Assembly (NCBI RefSeq): GCF_000150275.1
Contig: NW_002060948.1
Location: 1,015,983-1,079,982 of the forward strand
Reading direction: 5' to 3'
Source: Trichoplax adhaerens
Taxonomy: Eukaryota; Animalia; Placozoa
DNA length: 64,000 nucleotides
The notes beneath the pieces are model-generated. The model had not been told where the DNA came from, did no database searches, and saw only the letters and a list, made by a program, of their open reading frames with translations. The translations under genes and the position numbers were made by a program. The stretch's first letter is position 1, and each line of letters begins with the position of its first letter. Shown in pieces: positions 27,914-53,527 of this stretch.

Positions 27914-30900
27914 ATGGCGACCGGTGGTGGTTCCCTTGAGGTTTCTGGTCCGGCGACATGCATTTCCTTAGACCATTGCAGAGATATTATTTCAGTGACA
28001 TACTGTGTACCATTAAATTGTATTATTGTAGGTGATATAGATGGACAAATTCATGTCGTTGATGCACATTCTTATGAACTTTTGAAAAGGACTCCAGTAG
28101 CAGGTAATGATTGACTGCTTAGTCTTCACCATATTGAGCTGCTTGACTATCCATGATTGGAATGGAGGATTGTGTATAAAAAGAGTATATCTTTTCTAAT
28201 TGATCTAAACATAATCGCGATATCGAGTAGATGATTCATATAGCATATCCAATACGGTACAGTAGTTAGAATAATAATTTGGATAATTTCATGTTGGTCT
28301 GCTGCTCTACTGTCGAAATAAACATCCGTAACATTCGTACTTGGATAATATACTGTACTGTTGTTAGAATAGAAGACAATACTGTACCATGCAAACAGGG
28401 TTCCCCCATTTTCGCATGGAGAAAGAACATTGCCTGTACAGTAGTATACAGTAATGTTAGTCAACGAACTACTGTAGTAATTGCCATACTTATTAGTTTT
28501 TTGATTAATCAATGTCATTATAAACTTGATGGCCTTTCTTCGTCCAATCCTCTTGCACATAGGTTGTATACGTAGGTTAATATGATAGAGAAAATGTGCT
28601 AGCTACTTTTCTTTTTCGTGAATGATCTTTACAATAAGTCATTCACTGATTACACACGACTACTGAATTTATGCTAGACTAGTAAAGGATTTTATGATGC
28701 AGACGGTAGGATTGACATAATGAAATCATAGTTAGTATATTCTCCTGGGACAAGTAGTAATTTCAAGTTTTTACGCTATGATCTATTGAATTTTGAAGGA
28801 CTCTAAGAAAAGATAGACTATAAGATAGTCAGCGATCTGGAGGTATCCTAAGATAATTCAGCTTGACTTCTCCCCATTCAATGTACTGCAGACGTTAATA
28901 CATTTGATTAGAAGATGTACAGTATCTACATATAGCTACATTATATGATGACGCTTACATTACATTCTTCTACTCCTTGCATTGAGAATTTAGTCGTAGA
29001 TACCCGAGGTCATTGATACATTTTCTAAATTACGCTATTGTACGCGTATTTGCAAATATCTTGACATTTTGACCCCTTTTCACAGGTAGGCGTACGGTGC
29101 CTACGATAAATAGTCATGTTACTGTATTAATTTAATGTTGTGCTTCATACTCGCTATCCAATTACGAGTATAGAGTGTTAGTGAAAATGATTAGATGATG
29201 ATTCTTTACCTAGTGCTGTAATTAGATTCTCGCTAACATCATGTCAATATTAAATTACATCAACAAGATTATATTTCATAGTCTTGAGTTCTATCGTTCA
29301 ATACCTTGGATCCATATTTGCTTACATAACGCGCTCTAGTTTTGATCGCCGTTGAAATGAATACTACTACTTATCAATTAGTAGTTTATGCTACTACAGT
29401 ATTCCAACTTAATCAGTATGAGGTAACACTTTAGTGCTATCTTTTAAATTTCCTAGACATGCAAGAGTCGATCAAATCGAACAGACATGATGCTACCGAT
29501 GATCGTATAACGCGCAGATTTATCTGTGATATTATTCCATCATAATGACATACTTAGGGCAGACTATGATAATAATAGTAATAAATAATTCTTTGAAAGT
29601 TTATGAAAATCTTTTGTCAGTTAACTACAATATATCGAAATGAATGCGTTACGGTACTGCTAGGTTACGATTACTGCGACTTTAAAATGTGTTATGATTA
29701 CGAGATTACGTATGGGTAGCATATTATTCTTTGATTAACATTTATTATGAATGAGATAGTTTATAGCATCATCTTATTCATAAGCTGTATTTTATGCTAG
29801 CTTGGTCCTTTTTTGATAGGCATTAAATACTCATGTCTACATGCGGAACTGATAAAATGGAACATTATTACATACTTATAAATTAAGTTTAAATCTAGGT
29901 GTACTGAATGTAATTTTATTTCATATTTTCGTATAATACGTATGTTAAAATGAATATATCAAGAACAGCATTAAGTAATTAGTTTTGTTGATTATAATGA
30001 TAATTATTATTACAGAAGAAGCGAGCCCTTCAAATACGCTAAAATGCGAGTGTATTGCAAAGTCTGACTGCCTTATAGTTACTTGTGGCCAAAAGATAGG
30101 CATGAGAAAAGCGATGAACGGCATATTTTTATTGGATACAATTCTACAAACTCCGGTGCAAAATAAAAGTCAGCCAATCTGTATAGATTTACAGCGTCAT
30201 GAGGTCCGCATCGTACTATCGCGATAAGTGATCAATAACAGTTAGCGTTGTAAAGATATCATTGTATAAAATCTGCATTTTAATTCTATCGTATACACTG
30301 TAATTCAATGATCTTTCAACTAAATTGATCATATTCTGTCTTTACGAGATTATGTTCAGTCTTTCATTATTTTGCAATGGAAAAGCAGTTTTAAGAAGCT
30401 CACAACTTATCATTATTTCTATGATTCAGGCTGAACGCATGATAAAATATGTGGAAAACAATATTTCTTTGGATACAAATTTTGAAAATTCATGTAGGAA
30501 ATTATACGATCAAATTACGGAATATTTGAATAATTACAAAGAGTATGATCGCAAATCTGCCAAAGTACGTATAGTAGCTCTTGATCGAAACCTTGTACTT
30601 TTAAAATACAGTCAAAGCGTAACGGTATACTATATATATTACGTTATATAATAGTGGTCAACGTGCTCGCTGACTTTGCAAGGAGATAGTTTTTTGTCGA
30701 CCTTAGCTGAATTAATGAATATCTTGGAAAAAAAGATGAAATCTTCATTGCCATTATTGTCGTCATTAATGGAGCGTGTCAGTAAACTGTGTGGTACGGA
30801 AATGAGGCAATTGCGAGGTAGTGATCGATCAATTATGTATGCTGAACTTACGCGACTAAAATCATTTAAAGTTTGGCCGCATATGAACTATAAGTAAGTT

Positions 30901-33900
30901 GTCTATATGCCATATTGACTGAATATAGTTAGCACCTTATAGGTATCTATGTATTTATTATGGTCCTCTCGTGACGATACGATTTCGCTTTAATGTTAAT
31001 TTTTAGATGGGCTGTGCCTAGAGCGATGGCTGAAGCGGGATTCTTCCATCAAGTAAAATATAATATATCCATTTAGCTATATTTTTTGTATTCGTTTTTG
31101 CCTATACATTTTCGTATATGATTTTGATACAATCTAAAGTATGGTGTATTATCTCGTTTTAACGGCTAATATAATTTAAATAACTATTCTACATAATCTC
31201 TTTTTCATTCTTTTTATCTATAATTATCAAAGCCGAACAGTTTAGGAGATGATCGTGTAAATTGTTTTACATGTAATTCTTGCTTAATAAATTGGGAGCC
31301 TTCAGATGAGCCTTGGTTAGATTAAGCTTACATATTATAAATTTAAACTTTTAAAGATTTATTATAGCTATGTTAACTTATATAATACTAGGTCTGAACA
31401 TGAAAGACATTGTCCTAATTGTCCGTATGTAAAGAATGAGTATACGAAAAATATTCCATCATGGGGTAATGTTGCGTTACTAAAAATATGTTTGCAAAGT
31501 CTACGTTGTCAAGTTGTATTCATACAATTTGTTATTATTACTAGATTGTAATGGCACCTTAAAATATAGAATTTTATTCTTGTTTTGCAGTGTCCCTTGG
31601 CACTAGTATTGCCCGCTATATCGATGTTGATTCTACTACTGTGAGTAGTATTATAATTATTTTGAGTTATATTAATTTATCTAAGATATTAAAAATTGAT
31701 TCATTATCCGTACTTCTTGCTTAATGTGGATTTTACTGAAACTGTTAAATATACCTAGGTTAGTTGCATTAGCAACAATCTGCATCGGCTACCTCTTATA
31801 GCTACAGCAATAGCATCTGATACTATTTTAATTTGGAATGTTATGCACGATCTTCAGGTATGTTTCAAGCCTTGACTAATTTGCTTAGATTATAGTCCTA
31901 AAGGGCATTTTGTGATCGTGCGTATTGTCTTTATGTTACATTTCAATTTTAGCTTCAGTTCGAAATAAATTTAGCGGCCTTGATAAGATACTCACACGCA
32001 TCGTCCAAAGATAATAACCTCCCTCTTGCAACTCAAATATCCTCTTGTGACGAAAGCAAAGCCAAGCTAGTTGATGATAGATCTGCTGACGAAAATCAAA
32101 TAGCAAATGACGTTAAAACCGTTCTTGGTTCGAAAAATGAATTATTTTTTTATAATTACATTAAATTAATGGGGCTTTTTAAAATGTTATATGATTATTA
32201 ACTATATTCTCATATCTTATAATAGATACCAATACGAACTTGACGAATGTACTTCAAAAATCTAGACATGCTAAAAATTTATCGATAACGTCGATGTCCT
32301 TTATTGACAGTATTGATTTAGTCCGATCAGAAAATGATGGGAACGCTAATATTGTAAATGAAGACTTTAATCCAAATTCTCTTAGCCTAGTTTGTGGTGT
32401 TTCCGTATCAAAGGAGTTTTACTTGAGTGATCGTCTACTTTTGGTGATTCTTACCACAAGTCCTCAGTCTATGGCGGAAAACAACATTGGAAAGACCGAT
32501 ATCAATAGCGTTGCAGAATCTGGAGCTCCGCCAGATGAAGATAACTGGCTGATTGACATATCAGACTATAAATCGAATGCATCTGCTATAAAAGACGATG
32601 AAAGTGATTATTCTTCGCTAATTTCCCAAATGCTCCCTTGCTTACCTGATAATCACTCAGTTACGAGTAGTATTGGTACAAGAACTGAAGATGAATTATC
32701 TAGAAATGACGATGTTAGTGATCATTTAGCGAATAATAACTTAATTGAGCTACAAAACGAAAATATATTGCAGGTTGTCCAATTACCTTGTGGAAATAGT
32801 AGTTCTTTTGTAATTTCCTTTATCTCGACAACTTCCGATAATAAGTACGTCATCGTTGTAGTTTCTCCTCATGAATTGCCTTCTGGTAATAATGATAGAG
32901 ACAATCATGGATTTGATGGTGGCTACTTATTTGTCTACGAAGTTGTATTATCAGAAAATGTAAAAAAGATATCCAAAAGACCATTACATAGTCTATGTAT
33001 CGATTCAGTGGAAGAGTCTATTGTTAAGGCAGCGCTCATACCTAGAAATGAACTTCGCCGTGAAAATTTATCGAAGAGTAATGATTTTGACAATTATAAT
33101 AAATTAGCTCACAGTCGTGATATCTTTATTGGCGCAACTAAAGGTGGAAGTCTGCATCTTTTTGACGCTGTCACGCTACAAGTAATAGCCTCGTATTCGT
33201 TTAGTGAGCTGATTTTGGATTTTAATGGCGAGCAATGTATGCAACTTTCTTATTGTGCTGCCGTGCAAAAATTATGTATTGCCTTCAAGGGTAGTCAATT
33301 GCACTTCCTTGACATGAATAAAATTGTACATATGCATAATCAGCTATATGAAAACGAAATAGCTAATGATGTAACTGATGGCCTAAAGACTAATGGTTAG
33401 TTCAGGAAAATCGGTTTATAGCAATTGATATTACTGTAAGTAAATCTTTTCTACATACTTTTTCTTATTATTTAGAAATATCGACAACGCTGTCGCAAGA
33501 GTTGTCATCTAAGATTAAAGATTTGATGCTATTTGCGTCATCGCTGGTTTGTCGGCCTACTGCAGATAAAGTTCAAGTTATTACTCCAGCAGGTTGGGTG
33601 ATTTTTCAACCAAGCAGAAAAAGGGAATCAATCGTAAATATTATTGATGATAGTAGCAATTGGTGTGCTTGTAAATACGATGGGATAAGGTAATTAAATA
33701 TACAGTGTTGCTGCCAATGACTACAGCTAATTTTAATTTTTACGATAATGAATATCAGAATCTAGGTTCTTTAATCATTTCATTATCATTCATTTCAATT
33801 CCAGTCTAACATCATCAGGTCGCAATTATGTGTTTGAATTGGTACTCTCTCGGCCATCTTATGTGAGCCACGTTAATGTTAAGGTTGTTATACCAGAAGA

Positions 33901-36900
33901 AGTAACTGGAAAATACGAAATCAGAGGAGCTTTACATGACAGCTATAATTATGTTAATACACTAAATGATTTACCAACTGGTGAAAATCCGTTGCAGACG
34001 AAGCTACACAGCTCAGTTAATGATGAAGGCGGTAAAACATATAGAGCCAAAGTTAGCAATATTGGATTAGTAAATAAAGCATCTACCGTTTTGTACCTTA
34101 CCTTAAGCATTCGGAGTGATAGTAGCTCATATCATGATGGTAAAAATTCTTCAAACATGAACCCAGAAAGTAGTATGAAATCTCATTCGTGGCACGGATT
34201 GATGGTTTATCTAAATGCATACTCGTTTCTTGATGAGTCTGCAAAGGATATTGTTATTAGAAATAGTTTGCTCAATAGCGAAGACATTTACACATCAATC
34301 ATAGAATCACTAGCCGGTAAAGAATTTCATACAGGAAATCTCGGAACAAGTTTGAAATCGAATCATGAGATGATATCTTGTACTACGATATCCTTAGATT
34401 TATTGATAAAGATATTAGCATACAGAGCTGGTATAGATGCTTCGTGAGTAACAAATTGCATGCGTATGTAGTTAGTAAATTAACTTTTACTGATATCTAC
34501 TACTTTTGTTGTTTAGGGCTTTATCCTATATTCAACATTTGCAATTAAATCTTGAGCGTATATCCCAGAACTACATAATATTTAACAATAGAAGTTGTGC
34601 ACATTTATTTGCAAGATTATTTATACAATGCTTAACGTAAGTGATACTTAAGTTTAAAGCATAGATAAAATTTCATTATTGTTGTTGTATCATGTTGATA
34701 AAGTAGGATCCACGTAATACTTGGACATATATAACTTTACTAAATGGGATTATTCTATCCGTATAATATTTGATGTGGTTATCATAGTTCCATTGCTAGC
34801 AAAAGTGCGAATTCTTTTCAGAATGAGGCACTGCGAGCTTTTCTGCGTATTCTGCCGAAGACAAGTGCAGCTGTCTCTTTTGAGGCTTTACAGTGGTATT
34901 TCCTGTTAATTTCCAATTGTATCAACAATGAAAACAGAGATACAGCTTTTGCTACATGCTGCCAATTTCTATCTGAATGCTGTTCCAGCTTATCTTCATC
35001 TTTAACCGAAGAGCATACTGTACTGCGATCATTGTAAGTTATTTGACTATATTTTGCATTTATTATGGTTGTTTATATCGATTTGTGAAATTTAATGTTT
35101 GATCGTAGCATTTGTGGTTTCGTTAAATTTGATGATCATAAAATGTTTTAATTTTTTTTTGACAGGTTTGGCTTATATGGTAATCCTCTAGAAGCGACAA
35201 TTTATTCCTCACCACTCTCATTATTGCAGCCTCTCTTTACTAATTCGATGTTTGATAGAGCTTTGGGATCTAGACTACCTGGTATCGATTATTGCATCAA
35301 CTGCTCAGAATTAAGCACTTATCTTGAAACTTTTGTCACTTATAAAGGTAAGGTATAGTGGTATTGATATGATACTATTTATACTTAGTATTGCGGTTGA
35401 GTAGATGTTTTAAAAGGCTGTTAAGCAATAGTATGATTCATAACATACTCATAATACAGTACTTATTATAGCGATACATATTCAAGCTTTATCTTGTAAA
35501 GTAAGGAATTGATTGTGTGTTCGTTAAGTAGATTTTCCGTCATCCTTTCTGGAGGCTGAGCCATTATTCTTTAAACATCATGCAGTAAGTTCTGGTGCCA
35601 AAGTTGAAATAGTGAAAGGTAAGATTAATGAATTACACAACTGGTATTGTAATGATTTCATTACAAACATTGCCTGTAATTAACGCTTAAATATCTAAAT
35701 GCTATCGATGTACATTATACTCTGGTCTTATTTAAATTTTAGGCTTCAAGTCAATAAATTCGGGTGATTCACTGGATGCTTCTAACGAATTTTTCGAATA
35801 TTATGATCACGATACGTTGTTTGAAGCCCCCGATAGCATAGATGATTATTATTTAGATAAAGAGGTAATTTATATTGAATGTGGTAGAGAAGCTTGAACG
35901 ATAGTTTAATTGATTTAACATTCGTTCGTCGTATTATGTTACTAATTATTAGTTAATTATTGATTAACTTATTTAAATACTTAATACTTTATTTGCCATA
36001 TATCGCTATCATCAGTTGGAGCAGTTGATTCCAGGCGGTAACATTAACATGAAGCCTTATAGTGGATCACTATTTGAACACAAAAAGTCGAAAGCATTGC
36101 TGAGAGATAGTAAGAAGAGTGGAATAGATAATTTATCAAGCTTGCCGCGAACACACGAAATCAAACTCAGTGTATGTATGAAATTTCAATTTTATTTCGC
36201 AACGTCGTTAGTGAAAAATTTTTAATTTTTTATCAGTCTGAGGTCTGAAGCCCATAATTACGACTGCATTATATTAGTAGCTATGTTACGGTCCATCCCA
36301 GGATTGGCCATAACAGCTATGCGTAGATCACTTGGATATTCTTTATTTAGATACTGAATACTTTTATAAAAATGATTGGCTTTTAGCCTCCTCCGTCGTT
36401 GGTTTTAATTGTAGAAAAAATATATTCCGGTTCCCGACACTATGTTACGATTGATTTTGGACGGCCTATAGCTCTAACGGATGTTGTTATACCTAGTTCT
36501 TCATACTTATCCGTAATTTATTTGGATGCTTGGTTAGATGGCGATAATGAGCGTAGACTATCAGTATCGACTGAAATTGGCAAAAAAAATTTTATACTAA
36601 ATGACATAGTACCCCCAGTTCTATGTCGCTTCGTTAAGGTTATAAAAGTAACAATTTTTTATTATTGTTTTTACCAAACCTATATATTGTATACGCATAA
36701 TGGATTTAAAAATATTCATTAATAATTAGCATTTTACTCAAATACACGCAAATAATCTTTCTTAATAGATTTCGATTATCGCTCGATCTCTTGGAACTAC
36801 TGGTACAAGTGTTCGTATTTCCTTAGGCAACTTTTATGGAATTTCTTCGGTTCTACCATGGCAGAATGATATGCATCGAGCTTCTATTAACGGAAAACAT

Positions 36901-39900
36901 GAATCGAATAATTTAGAGAGACAAATTTTTAGAAATTTAGAGGAATATCGTCAATCATTCCACTCTTTTCTAGATGATCTATGCTGCCGATATGAAATAG
37001 CATGTAGCTATTTTCGGGAGATATTAAATAAATCTGTTTCAGGTTCTGTTATGCAAAGGAACCATTTTGATCGATCAGCGTTTACTGAAGCATATTGCAC
37101 TTGTATTAAACTTCAATTGCAACTAAATACTGGTAGCAGAATACTGGAGAGACTCGATGCAAATGCTATAGAATACGAAAAGCGAAGCTATGATTTCAAT
37201 AGTAATCTTTGCCTTCAGTTGATTAACACCTTGCTATCAATAGCTAACTTTGATCAAATCAATCTGGATTCTTGTCATATATTCACGAAATATATGACGC
37301 GAGATTTTTGTAAATCGTTATTTATCGCTTTATGTGTAAATGGTTCACCGCTAGTTTGTGTTCGTACTGGGGCGCTATTGCTCCATATTTGTGGATCGCA
37401 GCCGTGGTGGGGAGAATTTTTAGCTGATATGCTTTATTGCTGTTATAGCAACATTTGGCGACGGAACTTGCATAATGAAAGGTATACTATAACATCCAAT
37501 CTGGATTGTTAACGATTACGGATGATGTATTTGTCTTTGGTTTAGATATTTCTTTTTGTTATACACGTATTTTTACTCGTCGCAGGTTATTTAGCCTACT
37601 TGTTGATATGGGACGTAGATCAATAGAATTATCAAATAAGCACAGCACACTTCATGGCATATTGCAATTTACTTATAAAGTCTTAACCACGCGTCATGAT
37701 GACGAAGATGAAAAGAATTCGATTGACTTTAATCTACTTTACTGGACGGTCATATTTATATCCGAATTACTGGATGGATTCACTCGAGGCAACCAACAAA
37801 AAAATGATAAGGGTAAGAGGATTTTATTTGTTATCAATACCAACCTATGCTGAATATTTTACTTTTAGGCTTTAGTATATGTACTGGGACATTTGAACTG
37901 GTACCTTATCTACCTTACAACTTATTCTATATTTTCATTAAATAACTTATTTTTCCTATTTATATTAATTTACGTAGATAAATCAAGGTGGAACTTTTTA
38001 TTAATTAAAGAAGCATCCAATCTGCCTACTCCGCCGGCCAACCCTAAACAGAAACTTAAACGGTCTTATTTCTCTAACGCTAATAACGGAATCTTTAAAA
38101 TATCCCCAACATTAAAAGAGGTGAGAAATATTACCTATATATTTTATGTTCGCAATAATAAAACTTAACAATAATTGAACAGGGATGGTACTTAACTGCT
38201 TGTATTATATATAAATTAAGCCATGTATTAGATCACTGATTGTATGTAATACGTAAACTATGTTTCATTTAAGAGCTATCTTGCACGAGATTCAACTACT
38301 TTAATGCTACTTAATTACCTATTATAATTATTATTCACAATATAATATCACACACTGCAATACGCGCATATCGCTTAAAGTTTAAGTCTTTCATGGATTC
38401 TATCTGACCTGATAGGAGTACAAAGATGATAATGATGGCAAGCCTGGTGCGTTTAATTCATCTGGTTCCACTAATGCTACGTTATTATCGGAGAACTTAG
38501 AACATTTACCGATAGCAGCTAGCTTAGCTAAAGATAGCGTCCAACCGGTTGTGAAAGAATTGATCGCTGTTATTCTTTCCTTAGATGTTGTTCAATGCGA
38601 AGATATCTTCACTGTGATATGCATGGTACAAGAATTTGTTGTTGATTATGTTATAGTAGAAAGTGTGAATGATTTACGCCAAATGAATTTTTATTAGGCT
38701 GTGCTGATTTTATCACTTTTACATAGGTTATAGCGCGGTTATGTTTATTAAGTTCTCCAGCAATAGTATTAGCTGAGCTATTAACAGAAGATCAACTTCT
38801 TGCATTGCTACATCAAGCTACATCTCATCAACGAACTGCTCCTTGGGTATCACATTCACTAAGTTGTTTATTATTAGATGTAACATCTGCTAGTTCAAGG
38901 AGATTAAATAGTGGCATTTCTTCACCGAAAAGGAAGCAAACCGGTAAGACATCCACCATAATTTTGAGAAGATCTCATATTAATGTTGCTCGAGTAAATG
39001 TTCGTAATTTTTAAGTAGATACCCGTGACAATTCCGTTAAGTCAAAGAACTCCAGTAACACTGCTTCAGAAGCTAATAAACCCAGCAAATCAAGTAATCT
39101 ATCTCAGATAGAACAGTCTGAATCATTAAATATTACATTGTTGGAAGAATCACACGGTAACTCTTCATTTAATATTTGGTCATATGAAAGTGGACATAAA
39201 TCCGCTAGTGACCCGAACAATCGTGGAACTGATCCTGAACAAACTACTGCCTCTTCAGTTGATAACCAGATATGTCTGGATTTACGTTTAAATGATCAGA
39301 TGGGTCAAATTGCGGAAATAAAACTAATGTCTCGATGTATTGATCATGGTCTGTTTTTAAAGAATTGTTTGAAAGGTCCCATCTTACGAAGTAACAGTTC
39401 ATCACAAAATTTTGATAACACATTAACTGGTACAGTCAATAATGTAACGGACAATACTGCGGTGATGCTATCAAAAACTTTTAATAACTTTTTTCAACGC
39501 AATTTTCACAACGATGATGACCTTAAATTTTTACTCAAGCTTTGGTTACAGTTAAGTGTGCTGCTACCGTTTAGCAATTGGAAACAAACGCACTTAAGTT
39601 TGGTTATGAATAAGGAAACGATTGGCATAATAATCAAGCGCATATGCAGAAAACAGTCAATTTCGGTTTCAATATGGCATGTCCTTTTCAAGTGCTTAAT
39701 TATAATATATGAAACATATAATGATACCCCGGATGAATTGTTGCAAGAATTGTTAATACACTTTTTCTCAGCTGTTAATTCTACTGACAAAAGTGAACAT
39801 AAAATTGGGCAATCAGTTATCCTAACGGTTAATCAATTTTTAGTAGCTCTTGCTGGCAGAGACGCTGATTTAATCTGTTCTGAAGTAAAATACAAAAGAA

Positions 39901-42900
39901 TTATGTTGAAGGTTCTTGTTAATCTTACCAATTCAGGGTAAAATTTTTATTTGCAGCCTTTATAGACATAATATTTAACTTAAAGATCTAATTTTAATTC
40001 AATATGCTTACAAACATCAAAAGTTAGAATGCTAAAAAGATGTGTTGTTATTTGATTTGTGATAATATAGAAATTCAACGACACCTAAAGGAATAATTTG
40101 CCAACAATCTGGTCCGCTGGATGCGCAAGTGATGTTTCTTAAATATATGATTAAAAATATGCCGACGAAAGCCAATGAGATCGATTTGGATGACATTATT
40201 CAACTTTATCGAAATACTAGCCTCTTGATATTATCTCATATAATCTCTGCAAAGTCAACATCAGATAATCACTCCGTTCTATTTGAACAAATCCTTCTGA
40301 CGCTATTAGCTTACTGTACTAGACTCGCTCGCTTATCATTGGTTGACAATTTACAGGAAGATCAACATGAAGTAAAAAATCCAGCAACTGTGGCTAATAT
40401 AGTACTAGATGAACCCGATATTATTACTGTATTTCTTCTAATTCTAAATCAAATTGATGATAAATATATTGGCATGAAAATATCTGGAGGTGTAGCCTTG
40501 AAATTAACTAAACACCATAGCCATCAAGATATGGTTGTATCTATTGCCGATTGGGTGCTAATGCTTATGTGTGCACTATTTAAAGGAGACGAACGAAAAT
40601 TAGTAAAATCTATTATTGAAGTTTTCAATGGAAAATCTATAAATAACATATTTCTTAAACGCTCTATTACCAATTATTTGTCGGATGCTCTGTTTCTTTT
40701 TGTTCAATTAGTACTTGAACATGAAGCTAGTAGAACAAACTTTATGGAATCGGGTTTGTAGACAGATTTATTAATGAAAAGGTAATTGTTACTAAGATCG
40801 GTAATATTAATATTTATAAAAATCTTATTAGGTGGCGGAGAATTATTATGTCATAACTTTCTGGAATCAGCTAACGACTCTTACGGATTATCAGTGCAAT
40901 TGCTTCCACCAGTGCCTAATTTATTATGTGATCCGCAAGTTAAATCCGCTTATGCAAAATATGTCTCCGGAAATTTAGTGAACTTTGCCCCTTTCTGTGA
41001 GCTATTTTAGTTGTTATAGTCGTTTAAGTAATTGATTAATATTACATTATATTATCATTTCAGGTAAGATTGTCTGTTCATCTTCGAGATCATCATCACC
41101 TAATATTTTATTGACGTCATCACTACGAAGTAGACGTCCTAGATCGGCATTATGGCGATTTCAATTCAATACAGGAGAAAGTTCATGCGATTTAATTCTT
41201 GAACTTCCTCATGTTATTCTGTTGTCGGAGCTGCACATTACACCTTATGTCTATTCCTTATTAAGTAAGATACATTCACTATATAAATTATTCATCGACA
41301 AGTGCTAAACTAATGATAAATTTTCAAACATGTGTTACTTAACAGTTAATATCTTATATGGTAGATTCTCCAAGCGCTGCAGCCATTGAAATTTCTGACA
41401 ATAAAGCATTACTTTCTCCTGTCTCTTATCCCGTTCAATGCTGCGGATTAAAAGTCATTAAACTAAAACTACCCAAACCCGAAATTGCTCGAGTAAATAT
41501 GTATATTGATATGGCATCTGACTTAATATTTAACAATTTATTATTGCATGTCCCCTGTTTTTAGTGTAAAGAATTTGCTGTTTTCTGTTTTGTAGTGCAT
41601 CAGAATTCAATTACTGCGACCACGCGATTCAGATAATATAGGGTTAATGCAAATAGCTGTACTGGGAAGGATGCCGTTTCTTTCTGAAGATCAAACTGTT
41701 ACGCCAAATAGAATTGATGAAGATTTTAAATCGAGGTATGATCTCTTCTGCTTTGCTATGAAATACTGGATATTTTTTGTCGTAAAATTATACTGGTACT
41801 GTTAATAAAGGCACAGCTTATAACAATAATATCTATTTATTTTATTTTTTTTCTGAATTATCTATTTAGTCTATATTGGTTAGGCTTGATCTACTCATGC
41901 TTAAATGATAAGTCCGATATAGTTAATAGCACTTTATGTCCTAAAATTGCAAGTATGCCATCATTTATTCATAAATGTGCACGCCTGTTAGGAGTTAACA
42001 GCCTTAGGTATGATTGATTGATTTTTTATTTTATTATTGCTATGGTTTGTATTACTAATACGTATTCTAATTTTATTTTATTTTGATTTAGTAATGACGA
42101 TCATATAAAGATCGAACAGATATTACTAAGGGTTGCTTCGAGTTCACCCGATTGCGCTTTATCATTATTACGAATGCTACTTTACCAAAACAGAAATAGT
42201 CCATTGTTATCATACTACGCTGGTGCTTCTTCTGTTTACACTATTTACCAGTTAGGTATTTCTGATGTCCCTACTGGTCGAGAAAGGTATTTAGTGAATG
42301 TCTTTGATAAAAGATCCTTATGCTATTGAAATTAATCTCCTTATTCTGTTTCTGCAACTACAGATTAAAATTAATTGCCGGATGGTTAGAAAATATTAGT
42401 GGTAAAACACCGAGTATTCTTCTGCGTACCGTAGCAAGTATATTGTGGCAATTTAAGGAAACGGAATGCCGTCTTTGTGATGTCATTAATGTGGATTTAA
42501 TTAAGTTAGTTTAATGTATTTTTGATAAGGAAACATTTCGATCTAATTTATATAAATACCATTTTAATTTTTTTGCTTTACTAGATCATTATGCAATACG
42601 GCTTTATCTTTAAATCGTGATAGAGAATCACAAAAAGCTATTGGCCTGCTAATATGTGCGATATGCCATGCTGAGAATTCTTTCACACCCGTAACAATTG
42701 AATATTTGCAGCTGTCATCTATTTTTGCTTTAAGATCCGAGAACGAAATTCATGGTCGTTTGTTACTTTCTTCTTTCATATGCCAATCCACATTTGTTGT
42801 TGAATTTATCTTACAGCAAGAAATCATATCAAAATTTGTAGTGTACGTGACGAAATTTTTCGAATTATTATCGCAAGGCCAGCCCAATTTAATGAATGAA

Positions 42901-45900
42901 GTTCGTCGGAAATGTTCTAGGCTTGTTACTATCATTGACTTTATTTCAGAGTTGTGCTTGCAGCCAAAAGCCCAGCAGTGGTTTGGGGATGAACCAGCTC
43001 TGTGTATGTGGAATTCTATTATTAAAGGCTTATGTACTCATCAGGATAAGCCATTATTGTGTCAACTGCCTAAACGTGACAGAATTGACATTGAAACAGC
43101 AACCATTTTACTGGTAAAACGGTTTACATCTCATAATTATCCGAATCAACAAAAGATTGTTGATATTATATATCGCCTTTTAGCCGTTAAAAATCACGAT
43201 GATGGAAAATCTCTACAGTATCCTCGACAGTGTATCATTCCTAATTTTTTTAGGAAATTACTCGCTCAAGTCATACTGCGAGATGAGTGCATCAATCTAC
43301 AAATCAGATATTTTAAACCTCTGGAAGAATTTTCATTTCAAAGTAGTTTATCTCATCCTCGATTTACAATCGATCGCAAGAAGTATCTTTTTGAAGCAAA
43401 ATTATCTGATAGCATCCATACTTTGATCGGTCCACTTTTAAATGAAAAAAATAATGTTATCATGGATAAAAAATTAGAACAGGCTGTCCAAAAGCAGCTA
43501 AGTAAGACTAAAAATGCTGGTGATGTTGAAGGCTATGGTGTTAAGATGGTATCAATTCCAGCCAGTCAAAGATCATTAGATCAACTTGATAGTAATGACG
43601 ATAATGATACCAGTGATGAAGAAGGATCATATGTAATATATTTCGGAGATTTTGCCTTTTTATTAAACTCGAAAGCGAAAAAATGCACAATTTCTCAAAT
43701 TCTTCAGTATTTGATTGATAAAGAAGTGATCAATTTATCACAACCTATTATTGAGTTATACGTTTGTACCCACGATCTACCGAGACCGCCATCTCTACCA
43801 GGTACAGTATATTGTACAGTAGAAATAGTAATGGTAGGAAATATAATTTTTACTAAATTGTAGACGGTTGTTATTACATTAATATAAATTTATCATTAAA
43901 ATTGTATAGCTATACAACAATTGGACTGGTCAACACTTGCTCCTCTTCCATCGTTTTTAAGTACTTTCATTAAGGCTGGCTGCGCGCAAATATTGGGCAA
44001 TAGAATTATCCCATCAATCAACGTTAACAACATTTATAGCTACTTGACTCCAATTCTTAAAACACTCTCTACTAATATTATGGCTGCTATGCCGCCGCAT
44101 TCTTTATTAAGTTTTGGAATGTTTCTGAATTTGAATGGATTTGCTGAAAAGTTATTAAGTAATGAGACAAGCGCCAGATGGTTGTTTAGGCTAACTTCTG
44201 GGGTGGAAATTAGTACTGAAGGAGGTATGTCATGCGTAGATGTAATAAATTTTGTATTTGCGTATTTCAGACAAATTGAACGAATAAATTTTGTACAAAT
44301 AGAATTACTTAGTTATAATTTGGATATTTTGGGATTCTTTTTCATTGTAGGGAATATCTCTACGGTTGCTGGTAAACTGTCCCTACCACTGAAGCCATTC
44401 ACAGCATTGGAATCTTTATTTCATGAAATACAGTTTTCTTGCAGCGAAGGGATAGATTTACGGACGGAAGCTATCGAACTTGGAATTATGCACTTACTCA
44501 TTACATGTTTAAAGATATTTGGTCACCTTGAACCGTTTATATCAATAGATCAGAATTCGGTAGGGAAGCCGATTGCTAGTGCGATATACTTGTAACGTGC
44601 ATTAAGCTTGTAGGCGCGGATATATTAAGGTGCTCTTTTATTAATAGGAGACTCAACAGCTGGAACATTCCGGTGTATCTTGCAGCGACGTGCTAGGAAA
44701 TAATGACCCAATGTCTTCTCAAAGGGAAAAAAGCAGAGACCATGATTTATACTATATGGCAAAAGGGACAGGATTTGGAACAGGATCGATTGCGTCTAAC
44801 TGGGATGTGGATCAACTGCTCATAGTTCAACAAATTGAAGAGTCTCATATTAACGCTATTTTGAATGTATGATTTTTAGAGTAGTTGTCTACAAATAAAT
44901 ATATTAAGCTTTCGTTTTTTTAATTTTTCATATTTGTTTATTATTAATAGGTGATCACATCCTTTCTGGAATATGACAAATCAACCTATTTATCGTTAGA
45001 TACAAGAGTAAAAGATACGATATCCACAATTCTTAAGAAATTAGCTCTATTATTTAAAGAATCGAACTTTGTGGTTTTTATTAATAATTGTCTAAGGAAT
45101 GACTCTGGTTAGCATTCTACTTTGCAATTCTCGAATACTTAATCAACCTAAAATTAAATTTTTAAAAATCTTTATGTTAGTTTTAGATATTGCACACCAT
45201 ATTCCGATGTATCAGTCTTTATTAAATGTCGTACGTAATATTGCAAAATGGCCGACGTTAATTCCGCTACTAGCTCCGGACGTCACCTCAAGCGAAGGCT
45301 CTGATGGCGTCGTAGATTTTATTAAAAATTTAAAAAGCTGCATCGAAATTTATTTGGGAAGATTAAGGTGCTATTAATGCCTATACAGGAACGAATACGT
45401 TTATCATTCATAAAATTGTTGTTATTTAATTCCTTTTTGCATTAATTATTAGGCCAAGTAAGAAAGGTACTTTTAAAAATGGCGATAAAATGATAGATGA
45501 AGGTAAGTTAACACCGGATTATGTGATGGCAACAAAGCTCTTCGAATATTGAATCGACAATATAATACTGAATGGGATGGTGAGACCTTATTCAGTAATT
45601 TTATTGTAAACATTTATTTCAGGATTGCAGAAAGAAAACAAAGAAGATCAGGACAGAAAAAACATTGCTTCCTTGATTCCGAATATTTTAACTACTTTAG
45701 AGATAGTCGAAAATGGTATTGCTTCTTATAGAAATGTGAATGAAGATATGCCAACGTTGGTTAACACGAATGCTGATATTAATGAAGAGCAACATGATGG
45801 TGATAGTGATCAAAATTATGTGGCAAAGATGAGATCGTTGCAGTTTGGTAGGCTATTCATAGATGATTGTTAACTAATTTAATTCAGTGTTCGAACTTGA

Positions 45901-47126
45901 CGAATATTTGATGGATCGGCTTCGTTGTTGATTTAATAATATACTATTTTTTCTTGCTACATTTTAAGATACTTACTGTATCACAACTGAAACGGATGAA
46001 AATGAAACGATATTTAACGTTCGCTATCACTATGCATCAGCCGTGCGTTCAGCAATAGCTAATGGTAGCGATTCTGGCAGTTCGGAGAGGGCTAGAAGGC
46101 TAGCTCAGGAAGCTGCGGCTTTGTCGAATTCCTTACCATTATCTGCCAGTTCTAGTGTGTTTGTCAGATGTGATGAAGAACGGCTAGACATAATGAAGGT
46201 AGGTCGGTACTATCTTACTTAGTTTGCAGCCAAACTAGTAATATATTAATATACTATACATGTAGGTTATAGTTACGGGTCCTAGTGGAACACCATACGC
46301 AAACGGTTGCTTTGAATTTGATACCTACTTTCCGCCAGAATACCCAAATGTTCCTATGCAAATAACATTAATAACTACTGGTAATCATACCGTAAGATTC
46401 AATCCTAACCTTTACAACGAAGGCAAGGTAATTTTAATGCTCTGTACTGTAATACCATTTAATGTTGTCCATGGATGATTTTACATTGATATTCTAAAGC
46501 TAATTAGCTGATTAATGGAAATAACTTTAAACCCTAATAGGTATGCCTGAGCATACTGAATACATGGGTTGGTAGACCAGAAGAAAAATGGAGCCCTCAG
46601 ACCTCGAATTTTTTACAGGTTAACTTTTAAAGCCGTAATTAATTATTGGCTGTTGCATCAACATTGAGTTTATTTCGATTTTGTATAGGTCCTAGTTTCG
46701 ATTCAGTCGTTGATTCTGGTATCTGAACCTTATTTTAATGAGCCTGGATATGAAAGGTCATATAATACCCCTCATGGTCAGCAAGCGTCGTTAGAATATA
46801 GCGCAAATATTAGACAAGCGACAGTTCGTTGGGCAATGTTGGAACAATTGCGTAATCCACCGTCAGGCTTTGAAGATGTAGGTACCAGTTTGTATTCGCT
46901 GTTTATTTTGTGAGTGCTGATAACTGCTAAAAACTTACTTTAGGTAATACAAAGTCATTTTGCAATGAAACGAAGTGAGATTTTAAAACAATGTCAAAAC
47001 TGGAGAGAAGAGTATGAAGATATCGTAAAAAATCACAGCAAAAAAGCAAGTAAAGCGTTCGTGAATAGTCTGGAACTTCTAAAAAAGCACATTAATAAGT
47101 TACAGGAAGAATTGAAGAAATTATAA
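27914..47126 (+). CDS. BIRC6: Baculoviral IAP repeat-containing protein 6 (BRUCE/Apollon), giant E2/E3 hybrid; very many exons
   Basis: ATG 27914 (MATGGG...); [19 protein letters not shown]; BIR domain; central blocks [45 protein letters not shown]; C-terminal UBC domain; stop TAA 47124-47126. Confidence 0.96.
30820..31440 (+). other. BIRC6: BIR domain-coding exons of BIRC6
   Basis: [23 protein letters not shown]|[15 protein letters not shown]|[28 protein letters not shown]|[13 protein letters not shown], with zinc ligands CxxC...H...C. Confidence 0.93.
46090..46877 (+). other. BIRC6: UBC (E2) domain-coding exons of BIRC6
   Basis: [34 protein letters not shown]|[19 protein letters not shown]...[11 protein letters not shown]|VCLSILNTW...|[20 protein letters not shown]; the catalytic Cys in GKVCLS is intact. 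Confidence 0.95.
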
Positions 47127-49769
47127 TTATTCATTTAATAAATTAGAATGGTATTGCTTTGCAGTATTGCGAGCGTGATATATAATCGTTTACTCATTGT
47201 ACAGCGTTACGTATATTCCTTCATATCTACAAATAGTACTATCTAATCTGCAGCAGAATGTTCAGCATGCATAGTATTAAGAGATTTGCCACATCATCTA
47301 AATAAAATGTTATCCTTTGCTTTGCTTACCAAGTCTATTCTGACTTATGGGTTAGTTAAATATGATATCTTATCATTATTTTTGTTATATCCTATCGTAA
47401 GTCAATACCTGTATGCTATGAACATTATTATTAATGATGATCTAGCGCATATGTTCCAATTACAATTTTAAATGCAAAATATATATATAAGTGCTACATA
47501 CGTATAAAAAAGCTCAAAAATTAATCAATGAATCAGTTAAATTGTTTTTACGATTTTAATATGACATCAACTAATACATGTATACTTTCAATAGAAGTGT
47601 ACGAAGTAGCAAGAATAATGTTCATACTGCAACTGTTTATGTAGCAGTTGTCGATTTTTGTTAATTAATCACAATGTAGTAAATGAATTTTGCATCTACT
47701 GTTGTGAAAATGGGGATACGAAGAGATTGGGTTATGATGAATCTTTCACTTTTTTTAAAGAAAATTGAAAGAAGTATTAAAATTATATGTTTGATTTAAA
47801 AAGCGAACAATAAACCGTATAGTAATAAGAAGTTTTAATTGATGAAATATGGATGTCAAACACTGCGTAATAGCATAATATTGGATTAGTATTAAGTAAC
47901 AAATTCTGGTAAATTAATTACTGTACTCCTAAAATATCAATAGGTCACTTGATAGCTGAAACACATTTTACTGTAAGTATACTAAATTGAGGAGCATTTT
48001 TGTAAACGAAGAAATCTTAGTTCATTTGGTGTCGGAAATCAAACTTTGCTTAAAGATGGTATGGTATGGCATTTTTTGATGCCTAGCTAATTTTAACCCT
48101 ACTACTATATATCGTATGTAATATACGAGTATAGATTCCTATATTTACTGCATACTTAGATCAATATTTCTTCGCGCTTTTCGAATATATATTTACCGCT
48201 TCATTAAGTATATCCTTGATCGATTATTACTTAAAATTGGTAGAAGGTGCATTCGCTTTTAATCAGATATAAATATTTACACAAATGATAGCTACGAACT
48301 GAGGAATATTTACTTATCGTTTTTAATTCATTTCTCGTAAATACGCGTATATAACTAACTACTCAGATTTGTAATTTTTCATTTATCAATAAATATTACA
48401 GCTGCTATACAATCTGATTCCTTGCCTAATCAGGTATAGTAGTCATGATGAACTATTCTTAAGACTATCAAGGGGCGTTATATCAATAAATTAATATGCT
48501 GTCCATATCGTCACGTCATGAGAATCTATGTGCAAGATGAAATCAATCATTTACAACTTTCGAACATTTCTATACAGTATACTCTATTGATAAATTACGT
48601 TACTTTTTATAGGTAGGAAAATCTGAAATAGGTTTATCAATAGTATAATTAAAATTCTATTGATAGTAAATTTACTCCAAATGAAGAAACACTACAGCTA
48701 TCATGCAATTTGATTTTCTCAGCCATGTTAAAATATGAGTACACAATTTGATATTAAAATACCGTACGAAAACAGCAGTGATAATGAAACATATTTATTA
48801 GGTTATACGTATGCCGCTTGTATACTACTGTACAAGTGTACATACGATATCACGGCAGAACAGGCTAAACACCAACGTTATCGAGGCTTTACATATAATA
48901 GTGTGTTGTTAATATATTAATTAATGTCATTGCAGTCTATGATTTAAAATTGATCGATTAAAGATCACAAAACCGAGATAATTTAGTGAATGCTTAGGGC
49001 TACTGTGTTGGCTTTACAAATAATAATGATAATATAATAATTAGTTGATAGAAGCGAATGTCAAACTCAACTACTGAATAACTTTAATATTATATAATAT
49101 GTTACGCCAATATTGTCAATTTATAGTAGTACCGCTCTTACAGTATATTAATAAGCTGAGCTAATACTGTATTCGTCTACATTACTGTGTATCGTTTTAA
49201 GACAAGACCTATGCATTAACCTCAACAAGCATGATCGAATTTGTTATAGAAGCAGCTATTTAGTTAAGGCACGAAATACAGCGTATTTTATAAGCTATGG
49301 CGGTCATTAAGGCAAATAGATCAGTTTTAATACATGCTCGACGTGCATTTATGATTGTATGATGAATAGCATAAGAGCAACGAATCTAGTCAATTTAAGA
49401 CTGTGCCTACTGTACTGTATGTATATGGATTGGAGGAAGGTTAAAATGATAATTACATAATTGATATTATTATTACGTAGATTCCTAAGTGTATATATAC
49501 TGCGTATAACAACATACAGTCGTGTAAATTTATGAATAGTATCAAGAAGGTAAGATAGTGATCGATAAAGTCATGAATTAGCGAATTAATATGATTAATG
49601 ATGCATCTTCATTTATTCTCTTGGAGTAGGTGATATAAAAGCTATGCAGTTTCGGTATTTATGGCAAAGCGTTTGCAAGGTCACACTGAAGATACATTCT
49701 TATATACAAGCACGAGTCCACATTTCATGGAAGCAAGACGAAATCCTATCCAAAGGCTGACGGAACATT

Positions 49770-49952
49770 TCACATTTTATCTAATTCACTGTCGACTTCG
49801 CTGATTTTACTTTGCAATATTCTTTTCTTAGCTCGTAGGTACTTCCTGCGAACTGAACCGATCTCGTAGCCGCAAACCATTCCTCCAACAAAGACCAACG
49901 TCAAAACTACAGTAAATGTAGTTTTACTCATGGATAGACTGTCACCACTCAT
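49770..49952 (-). CDS. MTLN: Mitoregulin (MTLN/MOXI/SMIM37)-like single-pass microprotein, 60 aa (53 aa from the second ATG at 49931)
   Basis: MSGDSLSMSKTTFTVVLTLVFVGGMVCGYEIGSVRRKYLRAKKRILQSKISEVDSELDKM: TM helix with FxxGxxxG, then RRKYL..KKR.LQ.K....LD, ungapped against recalled human MTLN. Single coding exon preceded by a pyrimidine-rich acceptor at ~49977. Confidence 0.75.
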   Translation of the reverse strand: MSGDSLSMSKTTFTVVLTLVFVGGMVCGYEIGSVRRKYLRAKKRILQSKISEVDSELDKM

Positions 49953-50924
49953 CTTTACAATCAACAAGCTCTGGTCCTAGGTAGGCAAAGAGAGATTTAA
50001 GTTAGTCAATCCTGTAAATATCTCAACGACGGATGAAATATGGTCTACTTATTGAATTGATCATACAACATTGAAAGTATTCCCTAAACTAATATATATG
50101 ATTCGTATTGCATTATCAGCTACAAAAAAAAGGGAGGCAATCTTCTTGAAAATGCTAGAGTGATAAAAAAGACTTTACCAAGGATATTTAGATGAATTAA
50201 AATGGAGAGATAGAATCAAGGAGTTCGATTAATAGCAGGTTTTAATTTTCCTGTCGTTATGGACTGATCAAGTTAGCTTATAATATTCCTCCACCCTTGA
50301 TGGACTATTTTAATTGGCTCGAGGGAAAGACTTCTGTTGGTGCCGCTCCTATAGAATTTACTATAGCCAAATCGCTGTATTATAACAAAGAAAGTACCGG
50401 GATTGATCCCGTTATAGGGAATCGACGATGCCAGTCTCTCAAGAGTGATTTATATATTAGGTGATATCATGTTTGGGATATATGATAGTCCTGTTATCAT
50501 CAAACTTTTGGTCACGAGGAGCCTTCAGACCATGTGATAGGCTGCCCTCAAGGTTCTTGTATGCTTTTTGGTACTGTACGCGATCGCCTTGAATACTAAC
50601 TATAATTAGTATAGCGTTGGGCGTGATCTACCGCAACTTGTACCGTAGAACTTGATCGATGATGAGGTGATTTGGCTTTGGCCATGCACAACGAGATTTA
50701 AACCAACTGCAGCAGCGGCTTGCAAGCTGAGTAATAAAGTGTTGAAAGTGCAAAAGCTAGGAAGAAAATTGGACTGGAAGGATAGAAAAAGACTCACAAG
50801 TTGTTAAACAGCTACTACCAGTTTACAAAGGACATCCAATTTTGAACGATATACAGTATATCTGACGGCTTAACCGATCACAAGGCAACGACGAGTTATC
50901 GCGCTGCAGAATTCCTGATCGAAA

Positions 50925-53527
50925 ATGGTAAGTCATGGAGAGGACGTATTGCTATAAACTGAAAATTGAAAATGCTTTGCCTCTTTAATGCATATTTTCC
51001 ACCTTTTTCAACCATCATGAATCGTTGTTAACCTATAAATAGAGACTGTATCTCACTTTGGGATCAAAATACTTGCTGTTACTTACATCTTGAAAACTAA
51101 TATGGAGAAGATAGTATTCTAATTGGCATAGCAACTGCACACATAGTCAGTCACTATTCGCATAATAGACCGTTGTACAGTATATCAAATTGCCGGAAAT
51201 GCTCATGAAGAATTGCCCGTCTAATTCACGATAATAATTATCGTGAATGATCAATTTACGAGCTTATACCTAATTCACTTACAACACTACTATACAGTAC
51301 AGCGTATTGATATGATGTCTATCATACGTGAAGTTCTTATATTGTTACGCTATATAAATCCAATGAAAGTAGCTCAGTTATCCGTCAGACTTGGAACGTT
51401 ATAGAACTCCTCAGGTTCTACATTGAATTCCTTGCTAGTACGTATGGATCAGTCTAGCAGATTCAGTAGACATGAATAGTGAACAAATGAGTGTAAATGA
51501 AGTCTATACCTGTAGATTACACTTGTACGATTCTATAGACAGTATCATGTATTATGGCACATGCCAAGCAAGGAGCTATGTTCAGGATTGCAGTTACTAA
51601 TCAGTAGGAAATGAGACATTTTAGTTATATCTTTTAGCTCTTTGTAATGAATGGAGCCTATGGAAAGGATAGAGAGAAATAAGCTTCTGTTTGATATCGA
51701 AATTTTTTATTCACTAATAACAGGGAAAGGCCAAAAGAACTAGAAAATTTGCAGAAGTTAAGCGCCTAATCAATCCTAAAGACCCAAGAATGTAACTATT
51801 TCATTAACTATGAATATTTACTTTTGCCATCACTTACTGCCTAAATGAAATATTCAAAGTACCGTTTTAAATAGAGAATCTATGGATTTACTTTTTACAT
51901 TGGAAATTTACTTTCATGTGTAGGAGATACAAATGTGATTTATGTTAAAATGAAAATTACTGCTGTATATTGAGTTAATTGCAACGAAATTTTGTCAGGA
52001 GATTGTCATACCTGATACCTACGTTCTTGTGATTTACACACTACAATATCGACCGGATAGCCTCCTTTGTAAATACTTTATGTCAAAATGTTACAAAACG
52101 GACTAAATGAGTACCAACAAATTAATATACAGTAGGTCTTTACATCATGCTATGCGTTAATACGCATGATTTTATATTATTTAAGAAGGATATTCCATAA
52201 ATTTTAATTCATGGAGCCTTTACATAAATAATATTACGACGATTAAAATACACGCTATTTTATAAACGGTTTATAATGTATGCTATATCTAACCTAGTTT
52301 GATGTGGTATTCTTGCAGCAAAGACAACAAACCCAGTAAAAAGAAAGACAATAAATCTGAAGACCAAGTTCGAAGACTGTAAGTCTTTAGTTCTTTATCG
52401 CTTTGTTAAATATTGATTTTATTACCATATATATTCAATAAGATAAGCTGCATGATGATCTAAATTGGAATGCTGCTCTTCCATGCGCAATGTATGCTAG
52501 ATATTTTTAACTAACACAGTACTTGGTTATTTATTCAATTTGTAGCCAGCCAATCTTCTCTTCCCTCTATTTTCGCTACAATACTCAACTAGGGCCGCCT
52601 TATCATATCATTGTAGATACAAACTTTATTAACTTTTCCATAAAAAATAAGCTCGACATTATGCAGTCTATGATGGGCTGCTTATATGCTAAGTGTAAGC
52701 AGATTTATAACTTGTTTTCTTTCGATTTTAGCCATTTATTGCATTTCTAAGTGATGTTAATATGCTAAAATTTGATCACATGCATTTTTGGGCTAAAGTG
52801 GCAAGTTCTGATTGAATGATGTAGGTACTCCTTGTATAACTGACTGTGTTATGGGAGAATTGGAAAAATTAGGACCCAAGTATAGGGTTGCCCTAAGGTA
52901 GATTTTTAAACATCAATCGATGGTACTTTGGTTAACAATAGTATTGCTTGTATAGTAATTGTGAATATTTTTGCAGAATTGCGAAAGATCCACGATTCGA
53001 GCGTTTACCTTGTATGCACAAGGGTACTTACGCTGACGATTGTATTGTCGAAAGAGTCAGCAGTGTAAATAGCAACTTCTAATTTCTTTCTTTTAATGCT
53101 GCATACTATACAATATGTTGCTGAACATGAAAACTGATTATTTTTTCCTTCTTTATACAGCAAAAGTGTTACATTGTAGCTACCTGCGATAGAGATTTAA
53201 AAAGGCGAATCAGAAAAATACCTGGAGTCCCGATCATGTATATTTCTCAGCATAAGTAAGTAATATCAGAATATAGTGCATTGAAGTATTAAGTGAAACT
53301 AACACGTTTCATGATACCGATCGTTATATCTTAGGTATACAATAGAGCAAATGCCAGATGCGTTTGGAGGTAAAAGCAATGAAACTTTATCTATTTACTG
53401 TTATGCTTATTGATTTTATTTAGCGATTGTTTGTAATCGGCGTTATTTACACGATATAGCAACAAATCCTTTACGATAACATGGTAATCGATTGTATTTC
53501 TTCTTGTTTTTAGCACCTAGGATTTAA
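50925..53527 (+). CDS. FCF1: rRNA-processing protein FCF1/Utp24 (PIN-domain nuclease); 9 coding exons
   Basis: ATG|intron|[14 protein letters not shown]...; [27 protein letters not shown]; [52 protein letters not shown]; [24 protein letters not shown]; [15 protein letters not shown]; stop 53525-53527. Confidence 0.97.

Follow-up and report, generated by a model that had tools for sequence, protein, structure and literature searches.

A transcribed gene for a mitoregulin-family microprotein in the placozoan Trichoplax adhaerens

Vertebrate mitoregulin (MTLN, also MOXI, MPM or LEMP; LINC00116 / 1500011K16Rik) is a protein of 56 residues with one N-terminal helix and a basic tail, whose coding sequence is contained whole within a single exon of a short, spliced mRNA (PMC6091870). 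The mammalian protein crosses a mitochondrial membrane once and binds cardiolipin, as shown in mouse and human, and it has effects on respiratory supercomplexes, the oxidation of fatty acids, calcium retention and ROS (PMC6091870). There is disagreement over its placement in the inner or the outer membrane and over its partners; split-GFP data speak for the outer membrane, with the N-terminus lying in the intermembrane space (PMC11920140). Copies of mitoregulin associate into a complex of about 66 kDa that is probably hexameric, and Trp37 has been named as an oligomer contact in the human protein (PMC11732159). It has been described as conserved from fish to human (PMC11732159), and a 2025 review states that invertebrates are commonly assumed not to have it (PMC11920140).

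The DNA analysed here is a stretch of 64,000 nucleotides from the placozoan Trichoplax adhaerens (the window, whose positions are used throughout). It contains, on the minus strand, a short open reading frame that a sequence-only reading had called an ortholog of MTLN, and this call is supported by a match to the Pfam family PF22002 (Mitoregulin), by conservation of the frame and by a spliced transcript. Our results indicate, with a probability of about 0.8, a real, transcribed, single-copy gene for a placozoan PF22002 member of 60 residues (possibly also of 53), most likely the ortholog of MTLN, whose function would be assigned by homology. The novelty lies in a placozoan member of the family with transcript evidence; non-vertebrate members were already in databases. 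The features of the locus are collected in Table 1.

Table 1. Positions of the microprotein gene, its predicted peptide features and its neighbours in the window.
Feature	Position	Strand	Remarks
Mitoregulin-family CDS, predicted	49770..49952	-	183 nt = 60 codons + stop; ATG 49952-49950, TGA 49772-49770
53-codon core from second in-frame ATG (49931)	49773..49931	-	Pfam match begins at its Met; relative P0001 begins here
Predicted transmembrane helix, codons 13-31	49860..49916	-	Kyte-Doolittle; carries family-invariant F-x2-G-x3-G-Y (F21, G24, G28, Y29)
Basic membrane-adjacent stretch, codons 33-44	49821..49856	-	net +7; holds conserved R-x-[KR]-[YF]-L-x-A-K-[KR] core
Exon 1, non-coding, at least 131 nt	50179..50309	-	RNA contigs; no ATG; in-frame TAA 50190-50188
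Intron, 202 nt, GT..AG	49977..50178	-	joint in RNA contigs of X15, X4; X1, X6 read through
Exon 2	48787..49976	-	24 nt 5' UTR + whole CDS + ~983 nt 3' UTR
Inter-gene gap, ~286 bp	50310..50595	.	between outermost RNA-contig ends of microprotein gene and FCF1
BIRC6 ortholog, 3' part	~30000-47830	+	e.g. exons 46043-46222, 46710-46913, 46965-47126
FCF1/UTP24 ortholog	50596-52897 and beyond	+	five exons in RNA contig, all introns GT..AG

The peptide and its family

The frame had been described beforehand as 60 residues long (53 from the second ATG), with one transmembrane helix and a basic tail. This is correct: it lies on the minus strand, and its hydropathy profile (19-residue Kyte-Doolittle) has a single hydrophobic segment, at residues 13-31, with a mean of 1.88. 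The net charge is zero over residues 1-10 and +7 over residues 33-44. The tail holds nine lysines and arginines and five aspartates and glutamates; its last third is mixed to acidic, its C-terminal end is acidic, and hydrophobic residues recur in it with heptad spacing (46, 50, 53, 57 and 60). The helix is rich in Gly and Thr, and there is no classical presequence, just the helix and the basic flank, as in vertebrates. In its size of about 56 residues (60 or 53), its one N-terminal helix and its positively charged C-terminal tail, the peptide has the build of a mitoregulin.

The sequence-only reading had also aligned the peptide with human MTLN, and a recount by hand, against the human sequence as quoted there, gave the same values: an offset of four, no gaps, 16 identities (about 29% identity) and C-termini in register. 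The one independent check on the quoted sequence is that it agrees with the naming of Trp25 and Trp37 in the 56-residue mitoregulin (PMC11732159). The Pfam alignment reproduces the offset, pairing residues 8-58 with profile positions 4-54 of 56 without gaps. By the hand count, the core common to the placozoan peptide and the quoted human sequence comprises S, F, G-x3-G, the aromatic at the end of the helix, RR, YL, KR, LQ, K and LD. Human Trp25 is replaced by Tyr29 and human Trp37 by Ala41; the latter position is Ala in the placozoan peptide and in all recovered relatives (P0001-P0011, proteins without name or accession). Relative to human MTLN, the placozoan N-terminus is four residues longer in the 60-residue form or three shorter in the 53-residue form.

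PF22002 is the best family for the peptide, matched at 40.1 bits (E 3.3e-10) against a gathering cut-off of 27 bits. When the whole assembly (105,631,681 bases in 1414 contigs, AT-rich, with about 32% G+C) was searched in six frames, a single place exceeded the cut-off (38.9 bits, E 8.6e-8 per genome), and the next best reached 15.4 bits. Because this is the sole match over the cut-off in 105.6 Mb, the gene is single-copy and the match is clear of the AT-rich background. A search of PDB sequences with the peptide and a search of NCBIfam returned no match, and of 133 pattern matches in a JGI metagenome scan with the family alignment none was confirmed. A two-sequence placozoan profile, run with HMMER against 1.84 billion representatives, gave four matches at E <= 1e-3 and no identified vertebrate protein; it is the Pfam profile alone that provides direct likeness to vertebrate sequences. 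Two other identities were considered and rejected: FixQ (PF05545), matched by the peptide at 15.4 bits against a cut-off of 29 (E 0.018), and COX14 (PF14880), matched by relatives only, at 12.5-14.4 bits against a cut-off of 25 (E 0.03-0.13). Subunits of the COX14/FixQ type are like the peptide in size, single helix and basic flank, but have no position-specific motifs in common with it.

The closest relatives speak to the coding nature of the frame. P0001, the only protein returned by a first word-index search, has 53 residues, begins at the second Met and is 74% identical to the peptide, with no indels and the same stop position. Its cluster-mate P0005, of 60 residues, is 78% identical and has no indels, the same length and the same stop position; its first seven residues are unchanged. 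Of its 13 differences, the last 17 residues hold 11, and the remaining two are conservative and fall within the helix. Conservation of the frame in related sequence, which had been proposed as a check, is thus found at about 75% identity, where frame, length and both ATGs are kept (P0005). Judged by sequence comparison, a frame that stays open, unshifted and equally long at such divergence, with its substitutions clustered, behaves as coding sequence.

Two more distant groups were added by a second word-index search and by HMMER against the 1.84 billion representatives. Members of one (P0002, P0003 and P0007-P0011; 81-104 residues) consist of the mitoregulin domain, with a PF22002 match of 47 bits, and a low-complexity tail. 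They are 36-38% identical to the placozoan peptide over the domain, without gaps, and the residues common to both are F13, V15, F21, G24, G28, Y29, R35, L39, A41, K42 and D58. The placozoan protein, like the vertebrate one, ends two residues past the domain, whereas the tail of this group runs on for a further 25-40 residues and closes with a conserved G-V-V-I-T-A in five of the seven; the tails of P0002 and P0008 have other endings, which look like those of a different frame or splice form. The mitoregulin papers cited here do not describe this longer architecture. The other group, P0004 and P0006, comes from ENA contigs of 5.9 Mb and 40 kb and has a complete mitoregulin domain (53 bits to PF22002) within an open frame of 278-290 residues, which continues beyond the point where the protein normally ends and has no stop there. 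Either the gene caller read through into an intron or flanking sequence, or the protein is longer. Full-length P0004 was part of the alignment used for a third word-index search, which was swamped by the non-homologous flanks of P0004 and brought nothing new.

The match to the family withstands controls for composition. An HMM made from the non-placozoan PF22002 proteins only gives the peptide 50.9 bits, about 31 bits over the best of 10,000 shuffles: the maximum was 16.9 bits among 5000 full shuffles and 19.8 bits among 5000 that kept the compositions of N-terminus, helix and tail. The next of the 917 open reading frames of the window scored 5.2 bits with the same HMM. The proteins in this HMM were first found through the placozoan profile, so that their selection is not fully independent; each of them matches the Pfam MTLN family on its own, at 47-53 bits. 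In a comparison by hhalign, the placozoan set and the P0002 group aligned over 53 ungapped columns with a probability of 97.7% (E 2.2e-12), and 12 positions do not vary among the three divergent groups (S9, F13, V15, F21, G24, G28, Y29, R35, L39, A41, K42 and D58). The HMM, the invariant columns and hhalign concur in a conserved core that is position-specific and goes beyond composition. The profile comparison that the sequence-only reading had suggested thus came out positive, both against PF22002, above its gathering score, and in hhalign.

Transcript and genomic neighbourhood

Contigs of four runs were compared over positions 47000-52900; X15 is declared as RNA-seq, X4 comes from another study, and X1 and X6 are DNA-like. 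The X4 contig (1322 nt, in mRNA sense) fits the locus without loose ends. At the 3' side, the RNA contig stops at 48787, with a poly(A)-signal-like hexamer beginning at 48799. Transcription of the frame, also proposed earlier as a check, is borne out by this spliced minus-strand mRNA in RNA contigs of two studies. As in vertebrates, the transcript is short and spliced and leaves the small frame uninterrupted, with the coding sequence wholly in exon 2 (X15 and X4); a difference from vertebrate MTLN is the placozoan 3' UTR of about 1 kb. The locus is present in runs of six studies, and it is therefore not a contaminant. Variant counts in the four runs were considered as evidence of constraint and set aside: there are none in the coding sequence vs about 10 variants or indels in the 3' UTR, but at the rate of the 3' UTR about two would be expected in the former, and the difference is not significant. 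The loose ends of X1 contigs at 48739 and 52135 read as remnants of sequencing adapters (ATCGGAAGAGC; CGTGTGCTCTTCCGATCT), an artefact of that run's assembly and not genomic sequence.

Since exon 1 has no ATG and holds an in-frame TAA, no AUG in the known mRNA precedes the ATG at 49952. This ATG has an A at -3, and the second ATG, at 49931, has a T. The two are in frame and seven codons apart; the seven-residue extension is identical in P0005, and P0001 was called from the second. The 53-codon form could be made from an alternative start via leaky scanning.

The neighbours of the gene were identified from exons searched singly; Pfam was mostly silent on the short ones, and the identities came from PDB sequences. 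On the plus strand, the 3' end of a BIRC6 (BRUCE/Apollon) ortholog faces the microprotein gene tail-to-tail; exon 46710-46913 of this ortholog, in the UBC region, gives matches to human BIRC6 chains at E 1e-20 to 5e-22 (PDB sequences). On the BIRC6 side the RNA contigs stop at about 47663-47831 and converge with the microprotein gene. The long open reading frames at 32240-44595, which had no Pfam match at E <= 0.001, are possibly additional exons of the giant BIRC6 gene. On the other side, the microprotein gene lies head-to-head with an FCF1/UTP24 ortholog, of which exon 52547-52693 matches human FCF1 (E 2.7e-21, PDB sequences) and exon 52827-52895 matches Pfam Fcf1. The gap between the two genes is likely a shared bidirectional promoter.

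Synteny with the vertebrate MTLN locus was not found, the neighbours here being BIRC6 and FCF1. In mammals the neighbours are NPHP1 and MALL, so micro-synteny has not been retained. Human BIRC6 (2p22) and MTLN (2q13) share a chromosome; a single BIRC6-MTLN pair on one human chromosome is no evidence of conserved linkage.

Predicted membrane insertion and self-association

Signal-anchored proteins of the mitochondrial outer membrane are marked by a short uncharged N-terminus, a helix of moderate hydrophobicity and a strongly basic flank. By analogy, the short uncharged N-terminus of the placozoan peptide, followed by its moderately hydrophobic helix and strongly basic flank, would direct single-pass insertion into a mitochondrial membrane. 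The membrane-adjacent basic stretch would bind cardiolipin, and the flank is a plausible site for this by comparison with the mammalian protein. The invariant helix face F-x2-G-x3-G-[YW] would mediate self-association into small homo-oligomers, to which the heptad-spaced hydrophobic residues of the tail might contribute as a further driver, and such homo-oligomers would in turn stabilise the organisation of membrane and complexes for respiration and fatty-acid oxidation. In terms of sequence pattern, the small-x3-small face (G24 and G28) flanked by F21 and Y29 is a classic helix-packing motif.

Structure predictions with ESMFold2 lend support to a possible self-association of the placozoan peptide. 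The model of four copies reached an ipSAE of 0.50 vs 0.01 for the best control, a value to be read with the caveat that four copies lie outside the calibration, which was made on two copies and is weak for eukaryotes. In that calibration, 21 of the 30 proteins solved as one-chain pairs reached the ipSAE mark, as against none of the 23 with a single-chain structure. Agreement between the runs covers 88% or more of the contacts, with a partner pLDDT of 78 or higher. The tightest modelled contacts pair residues 21-21, 24-24, 25-28 and 28-28 of parallel helices (F21, G24, M25 and G28). Some of the modelled contacts in the tail are antiparallel, which is at odds with a parallel membrane bundle.

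Alternative readings and the age of the family

The gene could encode a true PF22002 homolog with another job or another place, in the ER or another organelle, or a member of a broader family in which vertebrate MTLN forms just one branch, rather than a one-to-one functional ortholog of MTLN. The conserved C-terminal tail of the P0002 group indicates more than one architecture in the family, human Trp37 is not conserved, 56 residues are too few for a resolvable phylogeny, and the vertebrate synteny is missing. Against these points, the gene is single-copy in the genome, its length, C-terminal register and core positions are those of the vertebrate profile, and its best-conserved parts, the helix and the basic flank, are the ones thought to drive targeting and lipid binding. 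We therefore regard this reading as unlikely, and orthology to MTLN as the better account of the data. Homology itself would be illusory if the peptide were a lineage-specific microprotein that resembles MTLN in architecture and composition only. Short single-pass peptides with basic tails are indeed common, the sub-threshold matches to FixQ, COX14 and LapA_dom indicate how widely the architecture is held, and the ESM Atlas scores of 0.81-0.82 are leads at most. Such convergence is very unlikely given that shuffles preserving helix and tail stayed at or below 19.8 bits vs 50.9 for the peptide, that the alignment is ungapped with 12 invariant positions in three groups, and that the match exceeds the Pfam gathering cut-off and is unique in 105.6 Mb.

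The transcript might also be non-coding, for instance a spliced, divergent RNA of the FCF1 promoter with a chance frame in it, given that it starts about 286 bp from that gene on the opposite strand. This is the reading to which we give almost no weight: at about 75% protein identity the frame is preserved in length and with both ATGs, the substitutions fall mostly in the tail, the PF22002 match is significant at the scale of the genome, and the start codon is the first AUG of the mRNA, with an A at -3.

The sequence-only reading had noted that the family is usually described as vertebrate-conserved. This holds for the literature (PMC11920140) but not for the databases. The ESM Atlas contains a cluster of 54 members named 'Mitoregulin family protein', all with PF22002, in which the commonest known phylum is Mollusca, and a separate cluster that is mainly Chordata; the Atlas scores (0.81-0.87) are leads only. 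With a Mollusca-labelled PF22002 cluster on record, 'vertebrate-only' is a statement about the literature, not about the databases, and the caveat that the sequence-only reading had placed on novelty, concerning family models that already include non-bilaterian members, applies in part. Our literature search found no paper pairing mitoregulin with molluscs and none pairing Trichoplax with a relevant microprotein or micropeptide. The suggestion that such a gene is easily missed by annotation fits what we found in a collection of 15 billion predicted proteins: neither the 60-residue nor the 53-residue sequence is in it, and homology searches never returned the protein of the window itself. This absence implies that the gene appears unannotated in the sources of that collection, and the Trichoplax mitoregulin gene is probably unannotated.

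A transcribed placozoan member makes the family at least as old as the placozoan-bilaterian ancestor. The earlier proposal that the module dates to early animals is upheld to that depth; in its wider sense, which would take in sponges and ctenophores, it goes beyond the present data. We lean towards the view, with less assurance than for the gene itself, that mitoregulin is an ancient animal mitochondrial microprotein that predates the split of placozoans and bilaterians, was missed by annotation in non-vertebrates and is not a vertebrate 'lncRNA' invention. Its function would then have persisted for over half a billion years, residing in the F-x2-G-x3-G-aromatic face of the helix and the R-x-K-Y-L-x-A-K-K flank.

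The case illustrates how small genes escape annotation. A sequence this distant also helps to tell residues that are essential from those that are dispensable: the G-x3-G face of the helix and the basic flank are invariant, whereas human Trp37 lacks conservation. Conservation of this kind bears on the unresolved mechanism of mitoregulin: whether the protein acts in the inner or the outer membrane, with which partners, and as an oligomeric pore or not. If the view of an ancient family is true, its minimal core could resolve the dispute over mechanism, and Trichoplax would offer a minimal system for testing it.
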